From: Macrostomum lignano
Lineage: Eukaryota
Assembly (NCBI GenBank): GCA_002269645.1
Contig: NIVC01005143.1
Span: 1 to 24,918 of the forward strand
Reading direction: 5' to 3'
DNA length: 24,918 bases
A program made the translations under genes and the position numbers. How positions within the stretch are numbered: the first letter of the stretch is position 1; every line of letters begins with the position of its first letter. Positions 6,659 through 22,378 of the stretch are shown here, one piece after another. A model generated the notes under the pieces. The model had not been told where the DNA came from. It did no database searches and saw nothing but the letters and a program-made list of their open reading frames with translations.

Positions 6659-6709
6659 GTGAGAGTTTTAACGTGGCTATTTATTTCCCTGATCGTGTTT
6701 CAGATGGAA

Positions 6710-7230
6710 AATCTAGCCAACACATCCCGGATGAAGGAATTGAATGGATTGCTAATCTAGCCAGCATCACTGATGAAGGAATAGAATGGATTGCTAATCT
6801 AGCCAGCATCACTGATGCAGGAATAGAATGGATTGCTAATCTAGCCAACACATCACGGATGAAGGAATATAATGGATTGCTAATCTAGCCAGCATCACTG
6901 ATGCAGGAATAGAATGGATTGCTAATCTAGCCAGCATCACTGATGCAGGAATAGAATGGATTGCTAATCTAGCCAACACATCACGGATGAAGGAATATAA
7001 TGGATTGCTAATCTAGCCAGCATCACTGATGCAGGAATAGAATGGATTGCTAATCTAGCCAGCATCACTGATGCAGGAATAGAATGGATTGCTAATCTAG
7101 CCAGCATCACTGATGCAGGAATAGAATGGATTGCTAATCTAGCCAACACATCACGGATGAAGGAATATAATGGATTGCTAATCTAGCCAGCATCACTGAT
7201 GAAGAAATAGAATGGATTGCTAATCTAGCC
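6710..7230. repeat. Intronic minisatellite, 12 units of 42-bp (A) and 44-bp (B) variants
   Basis: A=AATCTAGCCAGCATCACTGATGCAGGAATAGAATGGATTGCT; B=AATCTAGCCAACACATCACGGATGAAGGAATATAATGGATTGCT. Order is B A A B A A B A A A B A plus a 9-bp partial unit. Confidence 0.95.
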
Positions 7231-7677
7231 AATTATCAAGCGCACTGAGTAACCCGGATGAAAAGCTGCTGCAGTCCTTAGCTGATCCAATAATCTGCAG
7301 GGAATTACAAGCTGATGCCATCATCCTTATGCCACGGATGGGGTAAAAAGTAGAAAAGTACACAGTAGTAGAAGCTTCAAACTTTGGGAGGGGGAACCCA
7401 GATCGTTAACCTATTAGTCAAGGCATTTGGCTTTGACATTTGAAATCCAGCAGCACGTAGTAAACGGCGAATCAGGGCTGCGCTCACTCGCAAATGATCC
7501 ATCAATCATGGATGGCCAATCTAGCTGGTTCGAGTTTAAAAGACAACTATTTAGAATAATATTAGATATATAAACGGTTTAACAGAGGCGCAAAATACAT
7601 TTTAATTTCCACTACCAACAGTTGGTATCGTGTGTGGTCCAGCAGAGTATAGAAAAAGCCTTGGGAAGATGGGAAAA

Positions 7678-7878
7678 GACGAGAGAGAGAGAGAGGGGGT
7701 CGAATGGGGGAGATAGAGGCAGTAGGGGATTCCCTGATCGGACCAAAGGAAGGGGGGCGAAGCGTGCAGCGAGAAGTGGATCGCGCTCGGACGGGGGAGC
7801 CCGGGCAAGAGAAGAGCCAGAGAGAGAGAGAGAGACGAGAGAGAGAGAGAGAGAGAGAGACGAGAGAGCGCGAGAAAG
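7678..7878. repeat. GA-rich purine tract with interrupted (GA)n microsatellites
   Basis: (GA)n at about 7678-7696 and 7819-7877; a further (GA)(GT) run at about 8109-8131. Confidence 0.85.
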
Positions 7879-9331
7879 ATAGCAAAATGGCTTAGTTGCC
7901 AGGGTTTTTCGAAACGAATGACGGAGTTTATCCAGCCTGGCGCATTGCCCAGTTCTGCATTGCCCTGAAAGTGGGGGAGGGAGCTGGGGGAGCTAAAAGA
8001 GGGGGCAGGGCAGGGCCGGTGCTGCACTCGAGTGTCTCTGCAGCTTGGCTGCAAAGAATGCCGCATAATTCAAGCTATACGGTGATGCTGCACCATGCCT
8101 AACCGAATCGAGAGAGAGAGTGTGTGTGTGCGTGGCTTCAGCCCACCGCATCGCCTGCATGGGAGAGTCTAAAAAAGCGCAACACCCACCCCGCCTCTGA
8201 GCCATCGAAATGGGATGTCACCCTGCTAACGGGGGACGATTTATGCTAGAGAGGTTTTGGGTTTTGTATGGGGCGCGACCCGCCTACCAGGAGTTTATGC
8301 ACGTTTCGGTTGAAACCGAAGCGCGGTCACTGCATGAGTTCGGCCATGTATTTTTCATAGGCCGGCAGAATGGGATGGGGAGGGAGGGTTGCTTGATTTC
8401 CCAGCAACTGCAGGCTGCTGCAGTGTAGCAACAAATTTATGGCAGCATACCGAGCCGCTGAGTCAATTAACCACAACAGCATGCATGAGTTCTTAGAGCA
8501 AAAACGCATCAAAGTATCTTATAGTATTTTCTGCCTGCCTCTAATGTTTTACTCTATTTACATGAAAATCATATAGAAAACTGGACGAAAATGCATCAGT
8601 AGCGACAGCTTAAATACAAAAACAGCGAAAAAACTACAACTGGTTCTTAATTGAAGAATCTTTTTGTAAGGAAGCTCAGAAATTGTTATGCTGAAAATGA
8701 CGATTTACATTTTTTGCAGCTCATGTATACTCAGCAACATCGAAAAGTCGCCATCACAGAACATTCCGTCTGTGGTCGCCACTTTTAAGAGAGCAAGTAA
8801 AGTCTCAATCTTTGCAGTGACGCAACTCAGCTACGCAGACTTGAGTTGAGGAATGAAGTGGGGAGCGGTGTGCGAGGGTTGGGCGGATTAAAGCTATTAA
8901 AGATATTTCAGAATAGTTTATGAGAAAGCGCTCACTGGCTCATAGAGTGGCGAATTTTCAATGTTGCTGAGCATATACTCTCGAAATATACATTTATCTT
9001 GCTTCAAAAATCTGACATACTCGCACCTGTATAATAAACAAAATCGATTGCTTTCAAATCTGCTTTGAGCAAAATAATTTGCATGCGAGGCCATTTGTCG
9101 TTGTGGGAACCGAGACATTTAAACAAAATGATAAACATTCTTTGTCTGAGACACCCGTTTCCACTTTTCAGTCCCCATCTTCTAAAAACTTTAGATTTAG
9201 TTTAAATTTTGCAAATGAAAATAGCCTCGCATGATGAGAATAATTTGCAGATACCAGTAAAAGCAAAACGCTAATGTATAATGTACAGCATCTGAATGAA
9301 TACTTAAAGCAGGAGCTGAAGGACGGATTTG

Positions 9332-12327
9332 TTATATCATAATTTTCCGGTTCAATAAGCAAACGGCCGCGCTACTGTCATGGTGCAGTCTCGGTTGTCC
9401 AAGCTGATCCACCCTAACAGAGCATTTCGTCAAGATGTGCCTGATAACTTCATCGGTCTTCACATGGCGCTTATCGTAGCGCTTGAGCATCTCCTTGAGC
9501 ATCTGCCTGGCCTCAGTTGTACTATCTGTAATCAACGCTACCGCGTGAAGCTCTTCAAAGTCGGCACTCCGCCAATCGCCGCGGACATCATCCAGAAAGG
9601 CTTTGGTAGCAGATCCAGCTTGATCAGGGCTATCAGAGAAACTCATTCGCAGAAGATACAGCAAAACAACAAAGTTCAAGTAGACTCTCCTCTCGTGAAA
9701 CGGCAACACGCTGGGGAAGCACGCCCGGCAGACCAGGTTGATCGACTGATCTCGATCTGGAGCGAACCGGATGCAGTCCACTGTTCCGTGGCCCATGCGA
9801 CAGCAGATTCGCCACAGAGTGTCGTGGCCAGTCAGCTGACTCCAGATCGCCTCTCTGGTTTTAGTTTTACTCAGTCCTTCCTTGATAGTCAAGTTTCGCA
9901 GAACGCGGCTGCTTTGATTGTCCAACAAAACCTTCCGTGCTGCTTCCTCATCGCCCAGTCTCATTAAGGCTAAGACTCTAAGGCAAATCTTGGCCGTATT
10001 AGCAAAGCTTGGAATCTTGTCTAGTTCGAGCATAAAATTCTGGGAAAGAGGCCTGTCTAACTTAATTAGCTCCATCAAGATCCGCTTGATTCGAATGTAA
10101 GCATTATGGTAGGCATCAGTCGATTCCTGGTCGCAAATTAACGAGAAGCCGAACGGGAACAACGCAAACGGGTGCACTGATAAATATCCAGGATCTTCCA
10201 GCGGCTTCAGTTGATCTCGGAATTCAGTTATGTATCTGTCAATATTTCCAATCACATGGTTAATGTGCTCCACAATCTTGCATTTTGGGTAATGATCCTT
10301 TTTAAAAAACAAAATGGTATCTTTTAGGAAGAAATGCGGCATGCAGTACTCTTCAATGTTGGACTTTTCTGTCATATAGTTTCGCAGCATGCGTAGAGCT
10401 GTAATCAATAGGGTTCGAAAATTCTCCGTCTTCCAAGCTTCTTTCGGCGTCTTCTTCAACATAAACAGCTGTATGGACTTGGCGTGGTAAGACTTTAAAC
10501 CGAAACTTTCGTGTTCTGCAGTGCGAATACCGAGCACTTTCTTGACAATGTACTTGAGAATAATATAGAACTGACCCTGCTCAGTGGTCAGTGAGCGGAG
10601 AACAATCCTCTCCAGAATTGATGTGCTCACTCTCAATTGAGTTCCTTCCTTGTTCGGCGTTCCCGCGCGGATCAGATGGCAAGGATACTTTGGTGACTTT
10701 ACTGCGTTACAGAGCTTCTGAAGCACTTCATCTGGAAAGTGTTCCTTGTCTTCTACCGAAGCAAGCATGCTGATTTCCGGATAGCCACACGCTGCATATG
10801 AGTAAACAATATCCATGCTGGGTGTCACATGCGATGCCTGGGTTGTCATCGCTGGCTGCGACACTACAATTATTAACAAGAGGCACGGGAGTCTGTAGAT
10901 GCCAATTATATTTCAAAGATTCAAATAGCAACAGCCATGCCAAACTTACCAACAGAGCGTTTAATTCTAATGTGCCCATTCTTGTAGATGTATTTCATGC
11001 CCTCGTCAATAGCGCACTGGCAAGCACCTTGGATGTGATAGCTCTGTCCCAGCATTATCTCGGTGAAGTCTATGTCCGACTCTCTGCTGACCGAGCCATC
11101 CACTGAGCTCAGATTGCAGCCCCAGCCGTCGCCGAAGCTGCCCAGGATGAAAATGGTTCTAGAATCCTTCTCCAGGTTATTTCCTTGCTTCTTTTGGAAG
11201 AAAGACCTATAGACGCCCTGCACTACGTCGGCGGCAGCGGTTTGCACTCGCGATCGTTCCCTGGTGAAGCCTGCTTCAGACATCCTTTTGCTCAGCTCGT
11301 TCATATCGACAGGCTGCCTGAAAAACAAAAATTTGTAGACATTTCCGCTTAACTTAAAAATACGAGTAAACGCATTCACATGAGCATCAAGCTACAATCA
11401 ATAGTAAGAAGCTTACAAAGAGCTACAGGCGGGTTTTTGTTCAGAACGCAAAGACGCTTCTGGATGAAGCAAATCGGCCAGCTCTTCGTTACCAAGGCTT
11501 TTGCAAATCTCAATGGCATGACGCCTCTGCTGCTCAGACACTCGGTCCCAAAGCAGGCGAGCGGTGGAACGGCGGTCGTAGGCGCAGCTCTGCGCCAGAG
11601 GGCACACTGTTGAACTGTCGGATTCATCGATATCCGGATTGTCACCCGAGCTCAGCAACAGCTTCACTACCGAATCGTGTCCGTTGCATGCAGCCAGCGA
11701 TAGAGCTGTTTGTCCATCAGTACAGCGAGCCTCAATATTGGCTTGATAGTCGATGAGGATCTTCACAATATCAACAAAGCCGCCTTCGGCAGCCGCCATG
11801 AGAGGTGTGTGACCGTCATCTCTGGCCAGCTCCGAGTCTGCACCAAGCCCGATTAGGAGTTCAACAATTTGCCGAAAGTTTGACTGGCACGCCACCCACA
11901 GGCAGGATTCTCCGTTGCTTCTGGTCGCGTTGTAATTGCAGCGAGAGTCAATCAGCAGTTTCACAATTTCGTAGAATCCGTAAGAAGTGGCCGTCCACAG
12001 GGCCGTCACGCCCCGAGAATCGGGAATCTCGGGATCGGCTCCCCCGTCGAGCAGAGTCTGAATGACTTCAATGTGCCCGTTGGCCGCTGCAATCCACAGT
12101 CCCGTCACATTGCCGTTTCGCAACTGAGCGTCGAGGTTAGCCTTCTTCTCGATGAGAACTCTGAGACAGTCTAAACAGACGTTCCTAGACGCGAACCAAA
12201 CTGCAGTCTCGCCGTTTTTATTTTCGTAGTTGGGATCTACTCCAGTGTCGATCAAGTCGCGTAGCCGTCTCGACAGGTTTTCTTTCGCACATTTCAGCAG
12301 CTCTTCGCCAGAGTCTGCCGATGCCAT
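9332..12327 (-). CDS. Ankyrin-repeat + Mab-21/cGAS-like nucleotidyltransferase (cGLR-type) protein, copy B, 936 aa, intact
   Basis: join(complement 11417-12327, 10950-11317, 9332-10863) = 2811 nt, open throughout. Intron 11318-11416 (GTAAGC..TTTCAG, phase 2) and intron 10864-10949 (GTAAGT..TTGTAG, phase 1). About 7-8 ANK repeats (e.g. GHTPLMAAAEGGFVDIVKILID). NTase motif LGS..DIDF, third Asp in SMDIVY, Mab-21 motifs QLRVSTSILER, LKSYHAKS (cf. cGAS SSYHVKT) and MPHFF. Confidence 0.92.
11479..12204 (-). repeat. Segmental direct repeat copy 1 (726 bp) within the ANK exon of copy B
   Basis: Base-by-base comparison with 15599-16322 gives 5 substitutions and 2 single-base indels. Confidence 0.95.
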
Positions 12328-12777
12328 TCAGGCAGATCTGAGTGGCATTGCTGCTGCAGAGGAGTGGCTTCTTCAGTTCTTTGTTTTAGTACCTTTTAAT
12401 TGGCACCAGGTATGAATTGGTTGAAACAAGTGTTATAAGCGGCTACGAGCTATATGCTTGTGTTTATGATATAATAGCTGAATATAGAGTAGCTTACTAT
12501 AAATGAATGAGCATCGCAGCTATATAAACAGAACAATTAAACTGTACAGTGTACCGTGCAAAATGTACAGCGCTGCCTTGTACGGGCGCACTGTTATGGA
12601 GAAAGCCTAAAAAAGGTACTTCATGCCCGCATACGCTCGTACTCATGCACGAGTACACTTAGCCTGACAAATTCAAAAAGGAACATAAGTTCCTCTCTAC
12701 CAATCTACTATGGATGACTCACACTCACCGGCCAACCATTCTCTGTCTGTGTCTGGCTGCTGAAATGCGCGCTCACC

Positions 12778-13295
<518 letters not shown>

Positions 13296-13435
13296 GACAG
13301 ACTGTAGGGCAAGATAAAAACCAAAAGGCAACAATTTACCTCGTACTTTTTAAACTGAAACAATGCCAATTCAAAGTGCGCCATGCGATATTTACTATGG
13401 GGTTAGAATGGTTTGGCATGCGGAATAAAAAATTC

Positions 13436-16400
13436 CTATATGAAAAAAATTCCTGCCGATCTACAGTAGATACATGTTAGGTTAAACATCGCAAGTCTAT
13501 TGAAACAGGCTTTTGCGTCAGAGTCGTGACGGACAGCCGAACAGTCAACTTTCCGACCAAGAATTTGATTGATGAGGACGTCCGTCTTCTCGTGACGCAA
13601 ATTGAAAAGTCTGCGCATCGCCTGCAAGGCCACTCGCTTTTTGTCCCGATCAGTGGCGAGCTGAGCGGCTGCAAACAACTCCTCGAAATCAGCGCCTCTG
13701 CAGCTGTCATCAATGACAAGTTGCGACCAAGCGAGGCCGCGGTCTGTATCAGAGGGATTTAGAAGTCGCAGTCTGAGGAGCTGCAGCAGCACTTCAAAGT
13801 TCAGGTACAGCCGCCTGTCGTGGTTTGGTATCCGGCTGGGGAAGCACGCCCGGCAGACAACGGGAGAGAAGCTCTCGTTGTCTTCAAAATCGATCCGGCA
13901 GCACATTCGCCACATTGAATCGCAGCTTTTCAACTGCTCCAAGATGTTCAGCTTGATACTCTCGAAGCTGCTTTCTTTGTCTGCACTGACAGACAGGTAT
14001 CGACAGGCAGTAAACTCGCTGTGCTCGAGTAGTAGGCGTCTGGCATCTTCGTTTTCACCTTGACGAATGAGCATCAACACTTTTAGACAGAGCTTGGCAG
14101 TGCGAGCGAACTCTGGAGACAGTCAATACCCGAGCCAATGTCCTCCGGCAGCGCGCTGTCCTTGGCTATTCCAAGTGTAAGCTTCAGGTACTTCTTGATG
14201 CGAATGTAGGCATTGTGAAACACATTCTCCGACTCTGTCGAATCGTCAAACAGAGAAAAGCCGAATGGAAAAAGCGTAAAAACATGCAGCGAAAGATGAT
14301 CGTTGCATTCAAGTGGCTTCAGTTGATTTTTAAATTCGACCAAGTATCGATCGATATTTTCAATCACGTGACTAATGAGCTGTATGATCCTAGATTTTGG
14401 GAGATGGTCTCTCTTCAAATACAACACCGCATCCTTCAGAAAGAAATGCGGCATGCAGTACTTCTCATCGTCTGGTAGTTGTTCATAAAAGACTTTAGCA
14501 TAGCGAGCGCTGAGATCAGCAGCTGGCGAAGATTATCGACTGACCACGCGTCGCTGTCAGTTTCCTTCAGCATGAAGAGCAGCAGCGATTTCGCGTGATA
14601 CGATTTGAGGCCAACGCATTGGTACTCTTCTCTTCTAGTACCAAGCACTCTCTTGATGATGAACTTCAGTAGAATGTAAAACTGACCCTGCTCGGTGCTC
14701 AGTGAGCGTAGAACTATGCTCTCCAGGATTGAAGTGCTCAATCTCAGCTGAGTGCCCTCTTCGTCTGGCGTTCCAGCGCGTATTAGCTGAACCAGGTGCG
14801 TCACCAGTGCGACTTCTTTTTTCAGCAGTGCCGTGATTTGCTTTGGAAAGTGCTTGCAGTCCTCTTCACTATCGGTTACAATGCTCAGTGCTGGATAGCA
14901 GCAGGCGGAATAGGCGTAAACAACGTCCATGCTGGGCGTTACAGGAGACGCCTGAGTTGTCATGGCTGGACGCGAACCTAAATTTATTGGTTTATTGCGA
15001 GAAATGTATTGGTAATTTTTTGGATAATATTCTTTTAAGTTCGACACTGGAAGAAAAACTAACCAACAGTAAGTTTTCCGGCAAGCATAACGTGCCCAGC
15101 TTTGTAGACAACCTTTTCCTCTTCAGACACGTCTTTGCACTTGCAAAAGTTCTTCAGGTGAAACTTTTGGCCACGCATGATCTCTGCGAAATCAATATCG
15201 GAGTCAAGGCCTATGGAACCGTCCGCTGTGCTGAGATTGCAGCCCAAGCCATCGCAGAAGCTTCCAAGAACATAGAAGTTGTCGATATGAAAATAACACC
15301 TGAAAATGACTTGCACAATATCAGCTGCGGCGGCGATGACTAGCGACCTTTCCTTTGTAAATCCTGACCGCTTCATCTCTGCCGATAATTCACTAAAATA
15401 TTTAAGGAATTTAGCTCCGATTTTTCATATATGTCCATCATGTGTGGGGCAAAATGTTCTCGTCGTTTTAAATAATCTACTTAAGAATTTAAAATCGAAA
15501 GAAAATATTCCGGGCATTTACCCCATATCTAGACAATATGCCGACGATTCTTGACCATGAAGATCTTGAAGATCTTCAAGAACTTGAAGAAGCGCTTTCA
15601 GCTCTTTGTTACCAAGGCTTTTGCAAATCTCAATGGCATGACGCCTCTGCTGCTCAGACACTTGGTCCCAAAGCAGGCGAGCGGTGGAACGGCGGTCGTA
15701 GGCGCAGCTCTGCGCCAGAGGGCACACGGTTGAACTGTCGGATTCATCGATATCCGGATTGGCACCCGAGCTCAGCAACAGCTTCACTACCGAATCGTGT
15801 CCGTTGCATGCAGCCAGCGATAGAGCTGTTTGTCCATCAGTACAGCGAGCTCAATATTGGCTTGATAGTCGATGAGGATCTTCACAATATCAACAAAGCC
15901 GCCTTCGGCAGCCGCCATGAGAGGTGTGTGACCGTCATCTCTGGCCAGCTCCGAGTCTGCACCATGCCCGATTAGGAGTTCAACAATTTGCCGAAAGTTT
16001 GATGGCACGCCACCCACAGGCAGGATTCTCCGTTGCTTCTGGTCGCGTTGTAATTGCAGCGAGAGTCAATCAGCAGTTTCACAATTTCGTAGAATCCGTA
16101 AGAAGTGGCCGTCCACAGGGCCGTCACGCCCCGAGAATCGGGAATCTCGGGATCGGCTCCCCCGTCGAGCAGAGTCTGAATGACTTCAATGTGCCCGTTG
16201 GCCGCTGCAATCCACAGTCCCGTCACATTGCCGTTTCGCAACTGAGCGTCGAGGTTAGCCTTCTTCTCGATGAGAACTCTGAGACAGTCTAAACAGACGT
16301 TCCTAGACGCGAACCAAACTGCCGTCTGGCCGTCTTTATCAGCATGGTTTACTGAGGCGCCTGCGTCGATGAGTCTCTTTAATTCCTTGTAATCATTTTT

Positions 16401-16487
16401 TTCAGCTACTCGAAGTAGTTGTTCGCCTTCAGCCGATATAAGGTTTTGATCGGGGATATGCTGCTCCAGACTCGCACGTGTAATCAT
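13436..16487 (-). pseudogene. Ankyrin-repeat + Mab-21/cGAS-like protein, copy A; four -1 frameshifts, so either a young pseudogene or an intact 946-aa gene with consensus errors
   Basis: Exons complement 15522-16487, 15064-15392, 13436-14977. Introns 15393-15521 (GTAAAT..TTTTAG, phase 2) and 14978-15063 (GTTAGT..TTTAG, phase 1) match copy B in position and phase. Single-base deletions lie near 16003, 15850, 14470 and 14111; adding 2 nt to exon 1 and 2 nt to exon 3 restores frame. No in-frame stops. LGS..DIDF, SMDVVY and LKSYHAKS are intact. Identity as a paralogue is high confidence; pseudogene status is uncertain. Confidence 0.6.
15599..16322 (-). repeat. Segmental direct repeat copy 2 (724 bp) within the ANK exon of copy A
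   Basis: About 99% identical to 11479-12204, offset about 4120 bp. Confidence 0.95.
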
Positions 16488-17451: not shown

Positions 17452-18040
17452 GTCAGTTAATGTGCAGCTTTGATGTGGAAATTTCTAGATTTTCTTCTCA
17501 TAAAGTTTTAAATTGGTTCTAATTTTAGACGGATAGAAAATCCTGCCCAAGTGCCTTAGCTTACTTCTTACTGGAAAAATCTACCATAAAAAGTCCGGCA
17601 ATGTGCTAACTATAAGAGCAGGAGCACAGTTTGCCTCATTTGAGTGGCTTACTGGACTCCGTGCTCATTTAGATTATTTTAGACAAAGCGCGTCCATGTC
17701 TCCCCAATGGTACTTTTACCCCCACTGTGCAAGGACTTGATCCCGCCTGGTTCCGTTTCTTGAGTGTTTTTAAGTGACACGTTAATCGATTAGGCTGAGG
17801 GCTCGGTCTCAATAACTGTGTGGTCTGTTTTCTTCGATTGAGAGCTCCGGCTTGAGTATTGCTAGTAGCAATTTCGGAGCAAGGGAAGCTTCAGGAAATC
17901 GGGACAGAAAAACCATCCAATATAGGCAGACAAATACGCCAAACTAGAACTACAGCACACAGTGGAGCTGAACTAGATGCCGTCGAAGTATATGTTGTAT
18001 TTTGTTTATTGAAGCATAAATTTTGCTTTATTTCTTCCAG

Positions 18041-18294
18041 ACTTTGACGAAAATAGCGACGGATCCTGCTACACAATCAGTCCCGGTTTCCACCAGTTTC
18101 CATTCAAGTTTCAACTGCCAGAAAGGCTGCCTTCATCATTCGAATATTACTCAGAGACAGGCCGAATCAAGGCGCGCATTACATTCAACGTCAAGGCGGA
18201 AGTTGAAAACGCGAAGCGCTCGGCCAGTCATAGTCGGGAGCGAACGATACTAGTTGTGAATTACTATGACTTGAACGCTCACCGTCATCTTATT
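18041..18294 (+). CDS. Alpha-arrestin coding exon 3
   Basis: TTCTTCCAG| ... |GTAAGT. Encodes PGFHQFPFKFQLPERLPSSFEYYSETGRIKARITFNVKA, the hallmark arrestin-N GxHxFPFxFxLPxxLPSSFE motif. Confidence 0.93.
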
Positions 18295-18450
18295 GTAAGT
18301 GATTCGCCATAATCAGTAATGAGTACGAGTATGAGCATGATGAAGGAATAGAGCAGATGCTTAGTAGAAAACGCCGTCGAAATCTCTAGAGCGTTAAAAA
18401 CTGTCGTCATAACCAATGACGCGACATTTCGAATCAAAATTATCATCCAG

Positions 18451-18813
18451 GATCGGGTCTGCTTGAAAAAGGAGATCTCCCTAGCCTATTGCTGCGTGAG
18501 CAAAGGACGGATAATCTGCGAATTATCGCTGGCAAAAACTGGCTACGTGCCTGGCGAGACAATGGACATTAGCGTGCACCTGTTCAACAGTTCCTCCGCC
18601 TGCGTCCGCAGCACCCACATCACCTTCCAGCAGCGCGTGTTCCTGTCGGCAGGCAGTCATAGGAAAGTGGCCTCGGCGCTGATATTCAGCATCTCTGGCC
18701 AACGCGTCAAACCCGGCGCTTCGGGTTATTACCACGACGTGATCCACATCCCACCTCTGCCGCCAACTGGAATGCCGCACTGCGAGATTATCGATCTGGA
18801 ATATGTGGTGCAG
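18451..18813 (+). CDS. Alpha-arrestin coding exon 4 (arrestin-C domain)
   Basis: CATCCAG| ... CAG|GTGAGT, 121 codons, phase 0/0. Encodes KGRIICELSLAKTGYVPGE..IPPLPPTGMPHCEIIDLEYVVQ. Confidence 0.93.
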
Positions 18814-19579
18814 GTGAGTACTGAAGTTTTTATGCATTTGAAGACGCAAGACAGTTTCTTATAGCAAGATTTGAATCATTTTTCTTGCATCAGTATAACT
18901 CAGAAGAAGCTAGCCGTTGACGGGACTAGCCGCACATAGTCACGAGCGGGAACTTACCAGGTTTTGATCGAATTCGCGATAAACCAATTCAGACACGCGA
19001 GCTAAATTAGCTAGCTTAGGACAGTAAACAGCTATAAAATGCAAGTATCAATAGAAAGGCGTCAACGCTAAAACCCCAAATCAAGCCGAGACCAGTTCTG
19101 CCTAATAAAACTGCTTCTGAGCGAGTCTGGCACACGAGACGGAACTCAATTAATCCCATGCTGCCGAATGTAACGAATTTCGATTTCGATTCCGCACCAA
19201 GCCAGCTTTAACTTCGGCAGCCTCTCTCGGTCCTCTGCACCCGACTCAATCTTGCCGAGTTTTTCTTCTTCTGGTTTCTTAGTTAAGACTCCTTAGCTAG
19301 GGAATAGCATGCTTGAGCATTGCTTTAGTACAAATCATTGCTATTATTGATCCGATCCGCGATGCCACAGAACATGCCGTTGCTTGAAAAAATCGAATGC
19401 CAACGGAGCGGATGAAGGCAAGATGTACCCCCGAGAACAGAGAGCACTTTATTACATCGCGTTTTAGAAGTTGGGAAAAGTATTACCCAAAGTGGTGCTC
19501 AGATAGGGTTTTTTCGGTGCATGACATGGCTGTCACATGGCTACCACAAAAAGTTACTTACGCAATTGAACTGGATTAG

Positions 19580-19584
<5 letters not shown>

Positions 19585-19644
<60 letters not shown>
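19585..19644. repeat. (CA)30 microsatellite about 40 nt upstream of the exon 5 acceptor
   Basis: Read directly. Confidence 0.97.
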
Positions 19645-19645
<1 letters not shown>

Positions 19646-19684
19646 CTGATTACACACTCCCCCATCCCGTTTTGCATCCTACAG

Positions 19685-19796
19685 ATTCAAATCGAGGCCT
19701 CGGGAGCTTTCGGGCAAACGCAGGTGCTTGAGCTGAGCCTGCCAGTCATCATAGGTAACGTGCCGCTTCGCGAATCTTTCATGGACAACAAGCAAG
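19685..19796 (+). CDS. Alpha-arrestin coding exon 5
   Basis: CCTACAG| ... G|GTGAGT. Encodes IQIEASGAFGQTQVLELSLPVIIGNVPLRESFMDNKQ, the end of arrestin-C (LPVxIGxVP). Confidence 0.9.
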
Positions 19797-19977
19797 GTGA
19801 GTGTTTGTTCACCTTAGGCTTCTGATGCACCGCTGGTACTCCTGTCTCTCCAATGAGATTTTTCTAAACGGAAAAGTTAATGTAGAGTTATAACTACGAG
19901 CGTACAAGGTCTTAAAAGGCTACCAAAATGCACACAAAAACACGCATATTCGCAATAGCCTATGCCACGCTTTGCAG

Positions 19978-20390
19978 TTGTCCCCTGCTTTGCCCACTTC
20001 GATTTCGGCACCGGAGACATTATCGAGCACAGTCCCAGCGAGCTGTCAACGGAAACGCCTCGGCCTGTGTACACCTACTACAAAACCGAGCGGCGACCTC
20101 TTGCCGGTACCGACTATGGCGACGGCGCAGGCACGGATTCCGTTATTGGCGTTGGCTACGGCAGCAGCAGTCAGGTGAGTCTCGACCGCGGACGTCAGCA
20201 GCAGCAGCAGCAACAGCAGCAAAATTTACGACCAATTATGGCTGCATCTTCCCTGGATACCAATGCATCATCCAGCCTGATGGCTAGCGGCGGAGGCGGA
20301 GGAGGCGGAGGTGGAGGCGGCGGCGGCGGAGGCAGGTGTTCCAGCCGGTCCAGTTACGGTGGACGAAACGGCACCATCACAGCCATCTGA
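19978..20390 (+). CDS. Alpha-arrestin terminal coding exon 6 with Q9 and G15 runs
   Basis: TTTGCAG| phase 1. Encodes VVPCFAHFDFGTGD..PRPVYTYY.. to TGA at 20388-20390. A consensus internal donor CAG|GTGAGT at 20174/20175 makes the true 3' end uncertain. Confidence 0.7.
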
Positions 20391-21785: not shown

Positions 21786-22378
21786 ATGAAACACGACTTG
21801 GAACTCGCTTTCGACTGGTTGAATGACATTGAACTGAGAGAAAACGAGGCTTCTAGATTTGCTTTACTGTCCGATAACGAGGTTGCTGAAAGGATTGACG
21901 CTGCTGTGCCGGAATCGACACGCCGGAAGGAACGATGGGCACTAAAGCAATTTGACGACTGGTTTCAGGAGAGGCAAACCAAACTGCTTCATGGAGACGC
22001 CTGCGGTCTATCTGTGTCTACCTATCGGCCGGCTTACTCTCGACTCCAATTGTGGCGAATATCACCAAACCCGTGTCTACGGATGGTAAATTTTCAAACC
22101 AGTCTCTAAGGAAGACTTGTGCCAGCAGGTTGCATCGGGCTGGACTGGCTAGGGACGATATAGCCCGCGTCACTGGACATTCGTCCAACGCAATAGAGAG
22201 GTACATACGGCTAGACGTCAAGGACCATTCGCGTATGACCTACGCTCTACACGCCAGAGGAGCCGTGGAGTCCAATGGGCGGACCAATGAGCAAGATGTC
22301 GTGTCTGAGGGTACTACCAAGAAGATGCGCATGACTGTCCATGGTGACACCAACAGCGTAGAAATCATGTTCGAGTAA
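21786..22378 (+). mobile_element. Internally deleted Crypton-like (DUF3504 / tyrosine recombinase) ORF remnant
   Basis: The N-terminal piece SRFALLSDNEV..PESTRRKERWALKQFDDW resembles the N-terminus of Crypton/KCTD1/ZMYM-like proteins. In another frame, about 50-80 nt later, KFSNQSLRKTCASRLHRAG..IARVTGHSSNAIERYIR matches the YR C-terminal (H)xxR..H..Y signature with H changed to Q. The middle of the protein is absent. Confidence 0.8.

Follow-up and report, generated by a model that had tools for sequence, protein, structure and literature searches.

A probable ankyrin-fused cGAS-like receptor gene and its old tandem paralogue in the flatworm Macrostomum lignano

The locus and the product of gene A

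Contig NIVC01005143.1 of the Macrostomum lignano assembly GCA_002269645.1, analysed over its whole 24,918 nucleotides and referred to below as the window, carries two tandem genes on its minus strand, here called A and B, which share one design: an array of ankyrin (ANK) repeats, a linker, a nucleotidyltransferase (NTase) core of the Mab-21/cGAS type and a C-terminal tail. Gene A is probably a full-length ANK-fused cGAS-like receptor (cGLR) of the Mab-21/cGAS NTase superfamily, and gene B an old paralogue that is probably a real gene as well. The parts of gene A are as follows.

9332-12327, minus strand: gene A as a whole, a putative ANK-cGLR gene of three exons
11417-12327, minus strand: exon 1, with the start codon, N-terminal cap, 7 ankyrin repeats and the start of the linker (residues 1-304), placed by the splice model, Pfam and identity to PAA45980.1
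11318-11416, minus strand: intron 1, 99 bp, GTAAGC..CAG, phase 2
10950-11317, minus strand: exon 2, encoding the N-lobe of the NTase, with G363-S364 at 11142-11137 and D385-I-D387 at 11076-11068
10864-10949, minus strand: intron 2, 86 bp, GTAAGT..TAG, phase 1
9332-10863, minus strand: exon 3, with D444 (10813-10811), Mab-21_C (about 10292-10561), the helical tail (residues about 700-936) and the stop codon

Splicing of the exons at 12327-11417, 11317-10950 and 10863-9332 (minus strand) yields a single open reading frame (ORF) of 936 residues. Its product, protein A, is identical at 936/936 positions to PAA45980.1, a Macrostomum lignano entry named 'hypothetical protein BOX15_Mlig022265g3'. Pfam analysis places ankyrin repeats at residues ~10-290 (Ank_2, E 1.7e-48) and a Mab-21_C domain at residues 528-617 (28.0 bits, with a cut-off of 24.1). 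Structurally, the full-length AlphaFold model (predicted local distance difference test, pLDDT, 87.5; predicted template modelling score, pTM, 0.86) displays an N-terminal capping pair followed by seven 33-residue helix pairs, that is, the tandem 33-residue helix-turn-helix repeats by which ankyrin proteins are recognized. A first-pass annotation of the window had described seven to eight ankyrin repeats, a linker and an NTase/Mab-21 core; this architecture is borne out in both genes, the model of A giving seven repeats and a cap. Beyond the array, protein A carries the motifs G363-S364, D385-I-D387, M-D444-I-V and S551-Y-H-A-K555.

The tail of protein A (residues about 700-936) is conserved, mostly helical and family-specific, with invariant W, N and F positions. 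Its earlier description as Cys-rich holds for the sequence of A itself but not as a conserved trait: C780 alone among the tail cysteines is shared by a majority of relatives (22/38), and on this count a zinc-binding module in the tail was rejected.

The NTase core, its family and the published record

When the full-length model was submitted to Foldseek, only DARPin and ankyrin matches were returned (DARPins and ankyrin-B at the top), so a core-only model was needed for the fold search. The core-plus-tail AlphaFold model has a pLDDT of 81 and a pTM of 0.84. Against the PDB, the top 50 matches of the core model are all cGAS (E from 2e-7, probability 1.00), with template modelling (TM) scores of 0.48-0.59 on the target and 343-413 aligned columns, essentially the entire cGAS catalytic domain. 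As modelled, the core therefore displays the bilobed cGAS-type fold, composed of a Pol-beta-like NTase lobe and a helical Mab-21_C lobe. A 10-sequence family profile searched against PDB sequences recovers Drosophila cGLR1 (8gjy, E 1.2e-7) and cGAS (about 4e-7). The comparison of predicted structures suggested by the first-pass annotation thus returned cGAS exclusively among its 50 best PDB matches, and the claim of an NTase core holds, in the form of a cGAS/Mab-21 fold with a complete predicted catalytic triad, fused to an ANK array.

The active-site set of the cGLRs (G-S, [D/E]-h-[D/E] and a third acidic residue) is present in A and in the conceptual translation of B. Of 48 aligned relatives, 43-46 retain each of the residues G363, S364, D385, D387 and D444. 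In the model, GS occupies a strand-to-helix turn, DxD the start of the next strand and D444 a later strand.

The family, the ANK fusion and protein A itself are already published; the finding is real but not new. The study in question, by Li et al., was reportedly later published in Cell in 2023. It defines the cGLRs as a metazoan family of >3,000 pattern-recognition enzymes (Li et al. 2023, PMC9980059, bioRxiv 2023.02.22.529553), some of which carry tetratricopeptide-repeat (TPR) and ankyrin-repeat modules, called 'predicted protein interaction domains', and it reports that nematodes and most platyhelminths possess Mab21-like proteins alone (PMC9980059). In its Table S2, PAA45980.1 is given three Ank_2 domains; in Table S3 it is sample 90 of the 140 purified proteins of a screen, as a construct that begins at R323 and is devoid of the ANK array (PMC9980059). 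The 399 residues listed for sample 90 match residues 323-721 of protein A exactly, including R584, which is distinctive of this contig's copy. Four further M. lignano relatives make up samples 89 and 91-93 (PMC9980059). The screen conditions comprised Mg/Mn, the four nucleoside triphosphates, poly I:C and a 45-bp double-stranded DNA, and the authors caution that many cGLRs appear inactive as their ligand is unknown (PMC9980059). A literature search found no functional study of Macrostomum cGAS or STING.

The ANK-fused cGLRs of Li et al. thus include the same protein, with the same fold and the same G-S / D-x-D / D active site, but gene B, the gene-conversion tract in the ANK repeats (see below) and the conserved C-terminal helical domain are not discussed there. 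The additions made here are local: the unannotated paralogue B, an old tandem pair in which ongoing conversion is limited to the ANK exon, the conserved C-terminal domain, and a caution on single-base frameshifts in this assembly (see below). The first-pass annotation had named as a refuting outcome that the family might prove to be already characterized and single-copy. This applies in part: the family is already characterized, with protein A standing in the catalogue and screen of Li et al., but it is not single-copy.

Among known systems, mammalian cGAS (PDB 4k97, 6ct9) and Drosophila cGLR1 (8gjy) are the best structural and profile matches, with the catalytic residues on equivalent secondary-structure elements. 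However, protein A shares only 12-18% identity with cGAS and cGLR1 (TM 0.48-0.59), and it possesses an extra N-terminal ANK array and a C-terminal domain of roughly 240 residues. No evidence of the cGAS zinc thumb was seen in protein A. MAB21L1/2/3 belong to the same superfamily as A and B and share their helical Mab-21_C lobe, but are without a predicted functional active site (PMC9980059), whereas the window genes retain theirs.

An exhaustive HMMER search of 1.84 billion representative proteins, made with a profile of the non-ANK part, returned 784 matches at E<=1e-3 and 81 at E<=1e-30. It was this search that revealed the family, a word-indexed homologue search having found 4 relatives only. 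Among the 15 matches at E<=1e-30 that were looked up, all those with an organism name are from M. lignano, and the ANK arrays of the paralogues differ greatly in length, from about 2 to >20 repeats. Judged from these matches, this is a Macrostomum-specific family of about 80 sequence clusters at 50% identity, in line with the large family proposed by the first-pass annotation. Two M. lignano paralogues, PAA59752.1 (P0011, 1099 aa) and PAA80948.1 (P0158, 1444 aa), combine the family core and ANK repeats with a C-terminal caspase domain (Peptidase_C14, E about 2.5e-25); these may be genuine fusions of a sensor/enzyme with a death protease, or else products of fused gene models.

The nearest relatives outside Macrostomum in the exhaustive search are five eukaryotic proteins of about 650-850 aa (P0099, P0104, P0113, P0122 and P0134; E about 1e-12 to 1e-16). 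They have Mab-21_C and Mab-21 matches, with the Mab-21 NTase model PF03281 above its cut-off in 4/5, and weak, sub-threshold C-terminal TPR matches in 2/5. Their counterpart in the scheme of Li et al. is the class of TPR-fused cGLRs; they differ from gene A in the position and type of the repeats, which are TPR-like and C-terminal in these relatives and an N-terminal ANK array in A.

Gene B, the history of the pair and the rest of the window

Gene B lies upstream of A on the same strand and is unannotated in the window contig.

13482-16487 (about), minus strand: gene B as a whole, tandem paralogue of A with the same design
15522-16487, minus strand: exon 1, ANK array, with 1-bp gaps at about 16003 and 15851
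15393-15521, minus strand: intron 1, 129 bp, GTAAAT..TAG, phase 2
15064-15392, minus strand: exon 2, NTase N-lobe with LGSFCDG and SDIDF, intact in the window copy
14978-15063, minus strand: intron 2, 86 bp, GTTAGT..TAG, phase 1
13482-14977, minus strand: exon 3, with SMDVV, KSYHAK, CMPHFF and the tail, and 1-bp gaps at about 14475, 14117 and 13491
11479-12221, minus strand: gene-conversion tract in the ANK repeats of A, 743 bp, about 98.6% DNA identity to its partner in B
15599-16339, minus strand: gene-conversion tract in B, partner of 11479-12221

Both introns of B match those of A in position and phase, and intron 2 measures 86 bp in each gene, as the first-pass annotation had stated. Its further statement that both genes are intact does not stand: B is untranslatable as assembled, and the frame breaks had been read through silently. 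A tblastn search with protein A passes through four changes of reading frame in B, which is not open in the window. Compared with four other contigs of GCA_002269645.1 that carry a near-identical locus (L001-L004, making five copies with the window), the window copy of B shows 1-bp gaps at five positions private to it, namely about 16003, 15851, 14475/6 and 14117 and, near the stop, 13491; four of the five fall before residue 702. In the consensus frame the stop codon is at 13484-13482, while the last ORF as assembled extends to 13436. The conceptual product of B keeps LGSFCDG, SDIDF, SMDVV and KSYHAKS. The motifs that had been described as kept in both genes (GS, D-I-D, the third Asp and SYHxK) are accordingly found as such in A, and in B only through conceptual translation. 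As a separate observation, the L001 copy of B carries a 2060-bp insertion at 6671-8726 (equivalent to window position ~13871, in exon 3), whose frame encodes a reverse transcriptase with a YADD motif and which resembles a non-LTR retroelement.

In the parts beyond the ANK exon, the two proteins are 56% identical over the core and 39% identical over the tail. Synonymous sites are saturated there (proportion of synonymous differences, pS, 0.74-0.83), so the duplication is old; a recent tandem duplication was rejected on this ground, and the family's 'expanding by tandem duplication' was an overstatement as far as this pair is concerned. The ratio of non-synonymous to synonymous divergence (dN/dS) in the core is about 0.11, with dS saturated, and by this measure both genes have long been under purifying selection. 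The ANK tract departs from this pattern, with a dS between A and B of 0.023 and saturation elsewhere; beyond the tract, the genes have diverged too far to be aligned by nucleotide BLAST. Each of the five assembled copies of the locus contains the tract. Together, these sequence comparisons indicate recent gene conversion confined to the ANK repeats. Between the assembled copies, the identity of the introns and synonymous sites of A is not explained by purifying selection alone, and homogenization between A copies, or a collapsed assembly, is possible.

The spacer between the two genes and the remainder of the window contain the following.

12778-13295, no strand: perfect (TACT)n microsatellite, 129.5 copies, in the A-B intergenic spacer

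On the plus strand, this microsatellite yields an artefactual 'LTYL' repeat ORF. A 42-bp tandem repeat occupies 6710-7231 (about 12 copies matching at 91%, and higher-order periodicity at 128 and 170 bp), and the ORFs overlapping it have no Pfam match. A neighbouring gene at ~18000-20390 (plus strand) encodes an arrestin-domain protein (ORF 18463-18864, Arrestin_C, E 8.9e-18) and has as its counterpart on L001 a 403-aa gene called at 163-2554. The ORF at 22052-22378 (plus strand) has a weak tyrosine-recombinase match (Phage_integrase, E 6.5e-4, below the Pfam cut-off) and may be a remnant of a Crypton/DIRS-type transposon. Positions 1-1000 have a G+C content of 25%, compared with 36-51% per kilobase elsewhere in the contig.

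Competing interpretations and significance

Several observations weigh against reading the locus as a working ANK-cGLR and its paralogue. Of the Pfam families proposed as a check by the first-pass annotation, Ank_2 and Mab-21_C are matched in A, but the Mab-21 NTase model (PF03281) has no match in gene A or in the close paralogues tested; this reflects sequence divergence of the N-lobe, which is covered by the fold search. The predicted positions of GS, DxD and the third Asp are those expected for a cGAS fold by secondary structure only. In the screen of Li et al., none of the five M. lignano samples has an entry in the 'Note' field, which names the 15 active enzymes (PMC9980059). A Pfam scan of ten flanking window ORFs of 102-154 aa found no STING, consistent with the first-pass statement that the window has none, and the planarian Schmidtea is without both cGAS and STING. 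With respect to B, no gene is called on the four other contigs examined (L001-L004), one copy is interrupted by the retroelement insertion, and frameshifting gaps per kilobase are about seven times more frequent in B than in A across the assembled copies.

These last points raise the question of whether every genomic copy of B is a pseudogene in decay, which would leave the locus with one working gene only; we regard this as rather less probable than a real gene B, though a serious alternative. All five assembled copies contain frameshifting gaps (five in the window, one in L001, one in L002, three in L003, and a 2-bp and a 1-bp gap in L004), a retroelement has inserted in one of them, and B was never annotated. 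B and its flanks differ between copies by 0.5-1.5%, with indels, versus 1-3 bases in 2996 bp (0.03-0.1%) for gene A, introns included. The substitutions among B copies (27 non-synonymous, 19 synonymous) give a dN/dS of about 0.42, which is not low but is compatible with some constraint. However, the gaps are all private to one copy, none being common to any two of the five, and the majority consensus of three B copies is fully open, for 931 codons. Furthermore, 8/15 of the private 1-bp gaps lie at columns that are variable among the remaining copies, versus 2.0% of ungapped columns (binomial P about 1e-10), which is the pattern of consensus calling on mixed read pile-ups and not of independent mutation; at three gap sites, the 'extra' L002 base just repeats the preceding base, like a polishing fix. 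Frameshifts are also seen in two assembled copies of gene A, annotated as proteins of 372 aa (PAA79180.1, P0294, g4) and 334 aa (PAA85414.1, P0296, g2) and each truncated by a single frameshift in exon 2, so that coding frameshifts are common among near-identical copies in this assembly. Gene A is nearly free of gaps because it has few inter-copy variable sites. The frameshifts of B are most likely consensus errors from the assembly of near-identical genomic copies, B is probably also a real gene, and a verdict of pseudogene based on its four frameshifts was downgraded. More generally, frameshifts of a single base are concentrated, in this polyploid-like assembly, where the copies differ from one another, and it would be wrong to take them for pseudogenization.

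For protein A, the mechanism proposed by analogy with other cGLRs is that it would rest inactive and make a nucleotide second messenger on binding a ligand, with the ANK array and the C-terminal helical domain as putative regulatory, partner-binding or ligand-binding modules. The core is mildly basic (isoelectric point about 8.8-9.0), so a nucleic-acid ligand is possible. A more specific proposal, put forward in the first-pass annotation and considered unlikely here, makes the ANK array itself the sensor: it would bind a pathogen or danger protein, in the manner of NLRs, and thereby relieve autoinhibition of the enzyme. Ankyrin arrays are protein-binding modules, their repeat number varies widely among the paralogues (about 2 to >20), the pTM of the full-length model suggests a fixed arrangement of array and core, and the core stripped of its array, supplied with nucleic acids, is not counted among the active enzymes. 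Yet this remains a hypothesis, Li et al. speak just of 'predicted protein interaction domains' for ANK and TPR, and the basic core resembles that of nucleic-acid-binding cGLRs. The homogenization of the A and B ANK exons by gene conversion is likewise unlike what is expected of a diversifying recognition surface.

Still less likely is a non-enzymatic Mab-21 scaffold that signals through protein-protein contacts and retains the catalytic residues for nucleotide binding only. Such a role has been proposed for MAB21L1/2, MiD51 and the shrimp Mab21 proteins that activate IKK-epsilon, and shrimp Mab21 proteins are reported to act outside the canonical paradigm (PMC12928593). The ANK-less construct was screened but stands outside the 15 enzymes characterized by Li et al., STING is missing in another flatworm, and the caspase domain fused to some paralogues would be a direct effector needing no second messenger. 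Against a scaffold, an old, diverged family has retained GS, DxD and D in at least 43 of 48 relatives, retention of the active site is the criterion by which Li et al. separate cGLRs from Mab21L1-3, and many true cGLRs show no activity in vitro unless their ligand is present (PMC9980059). The reading of A as an ANK-fused cGLR is preferred.

How an ANK-cGLR would signal in this animal can be outlined only speculatively. A word-index protein search with the C-terminal domain of human STING found no flatworm protein, its named matches being all deuterostome, and is too insensitive to decide the matter; M. lignano is absent from Table S5 of Li et al. (PMC9980059). One scenario, to which we give little credence as a whole, is that Macrostomum, unlike planarians and parasitic flatworms, kept ANK-cGLRs and expanded them to about 80-100 genes, which would sense protein through their variable ANK arrays and signal without canonical STING, through another receptor or through fused effectors such as the caspase domains of PAA59752.1 and PAA80948.1.

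The cGLRs are a major family of innate immune sensors in animals, and their ANK- and TPR-fused members are obvious candidates for the sensing of ligands other than nucleic acids. M. lignano, with its ANK-fused family, is a flatworm tractable by transgenesis and RNA interference.

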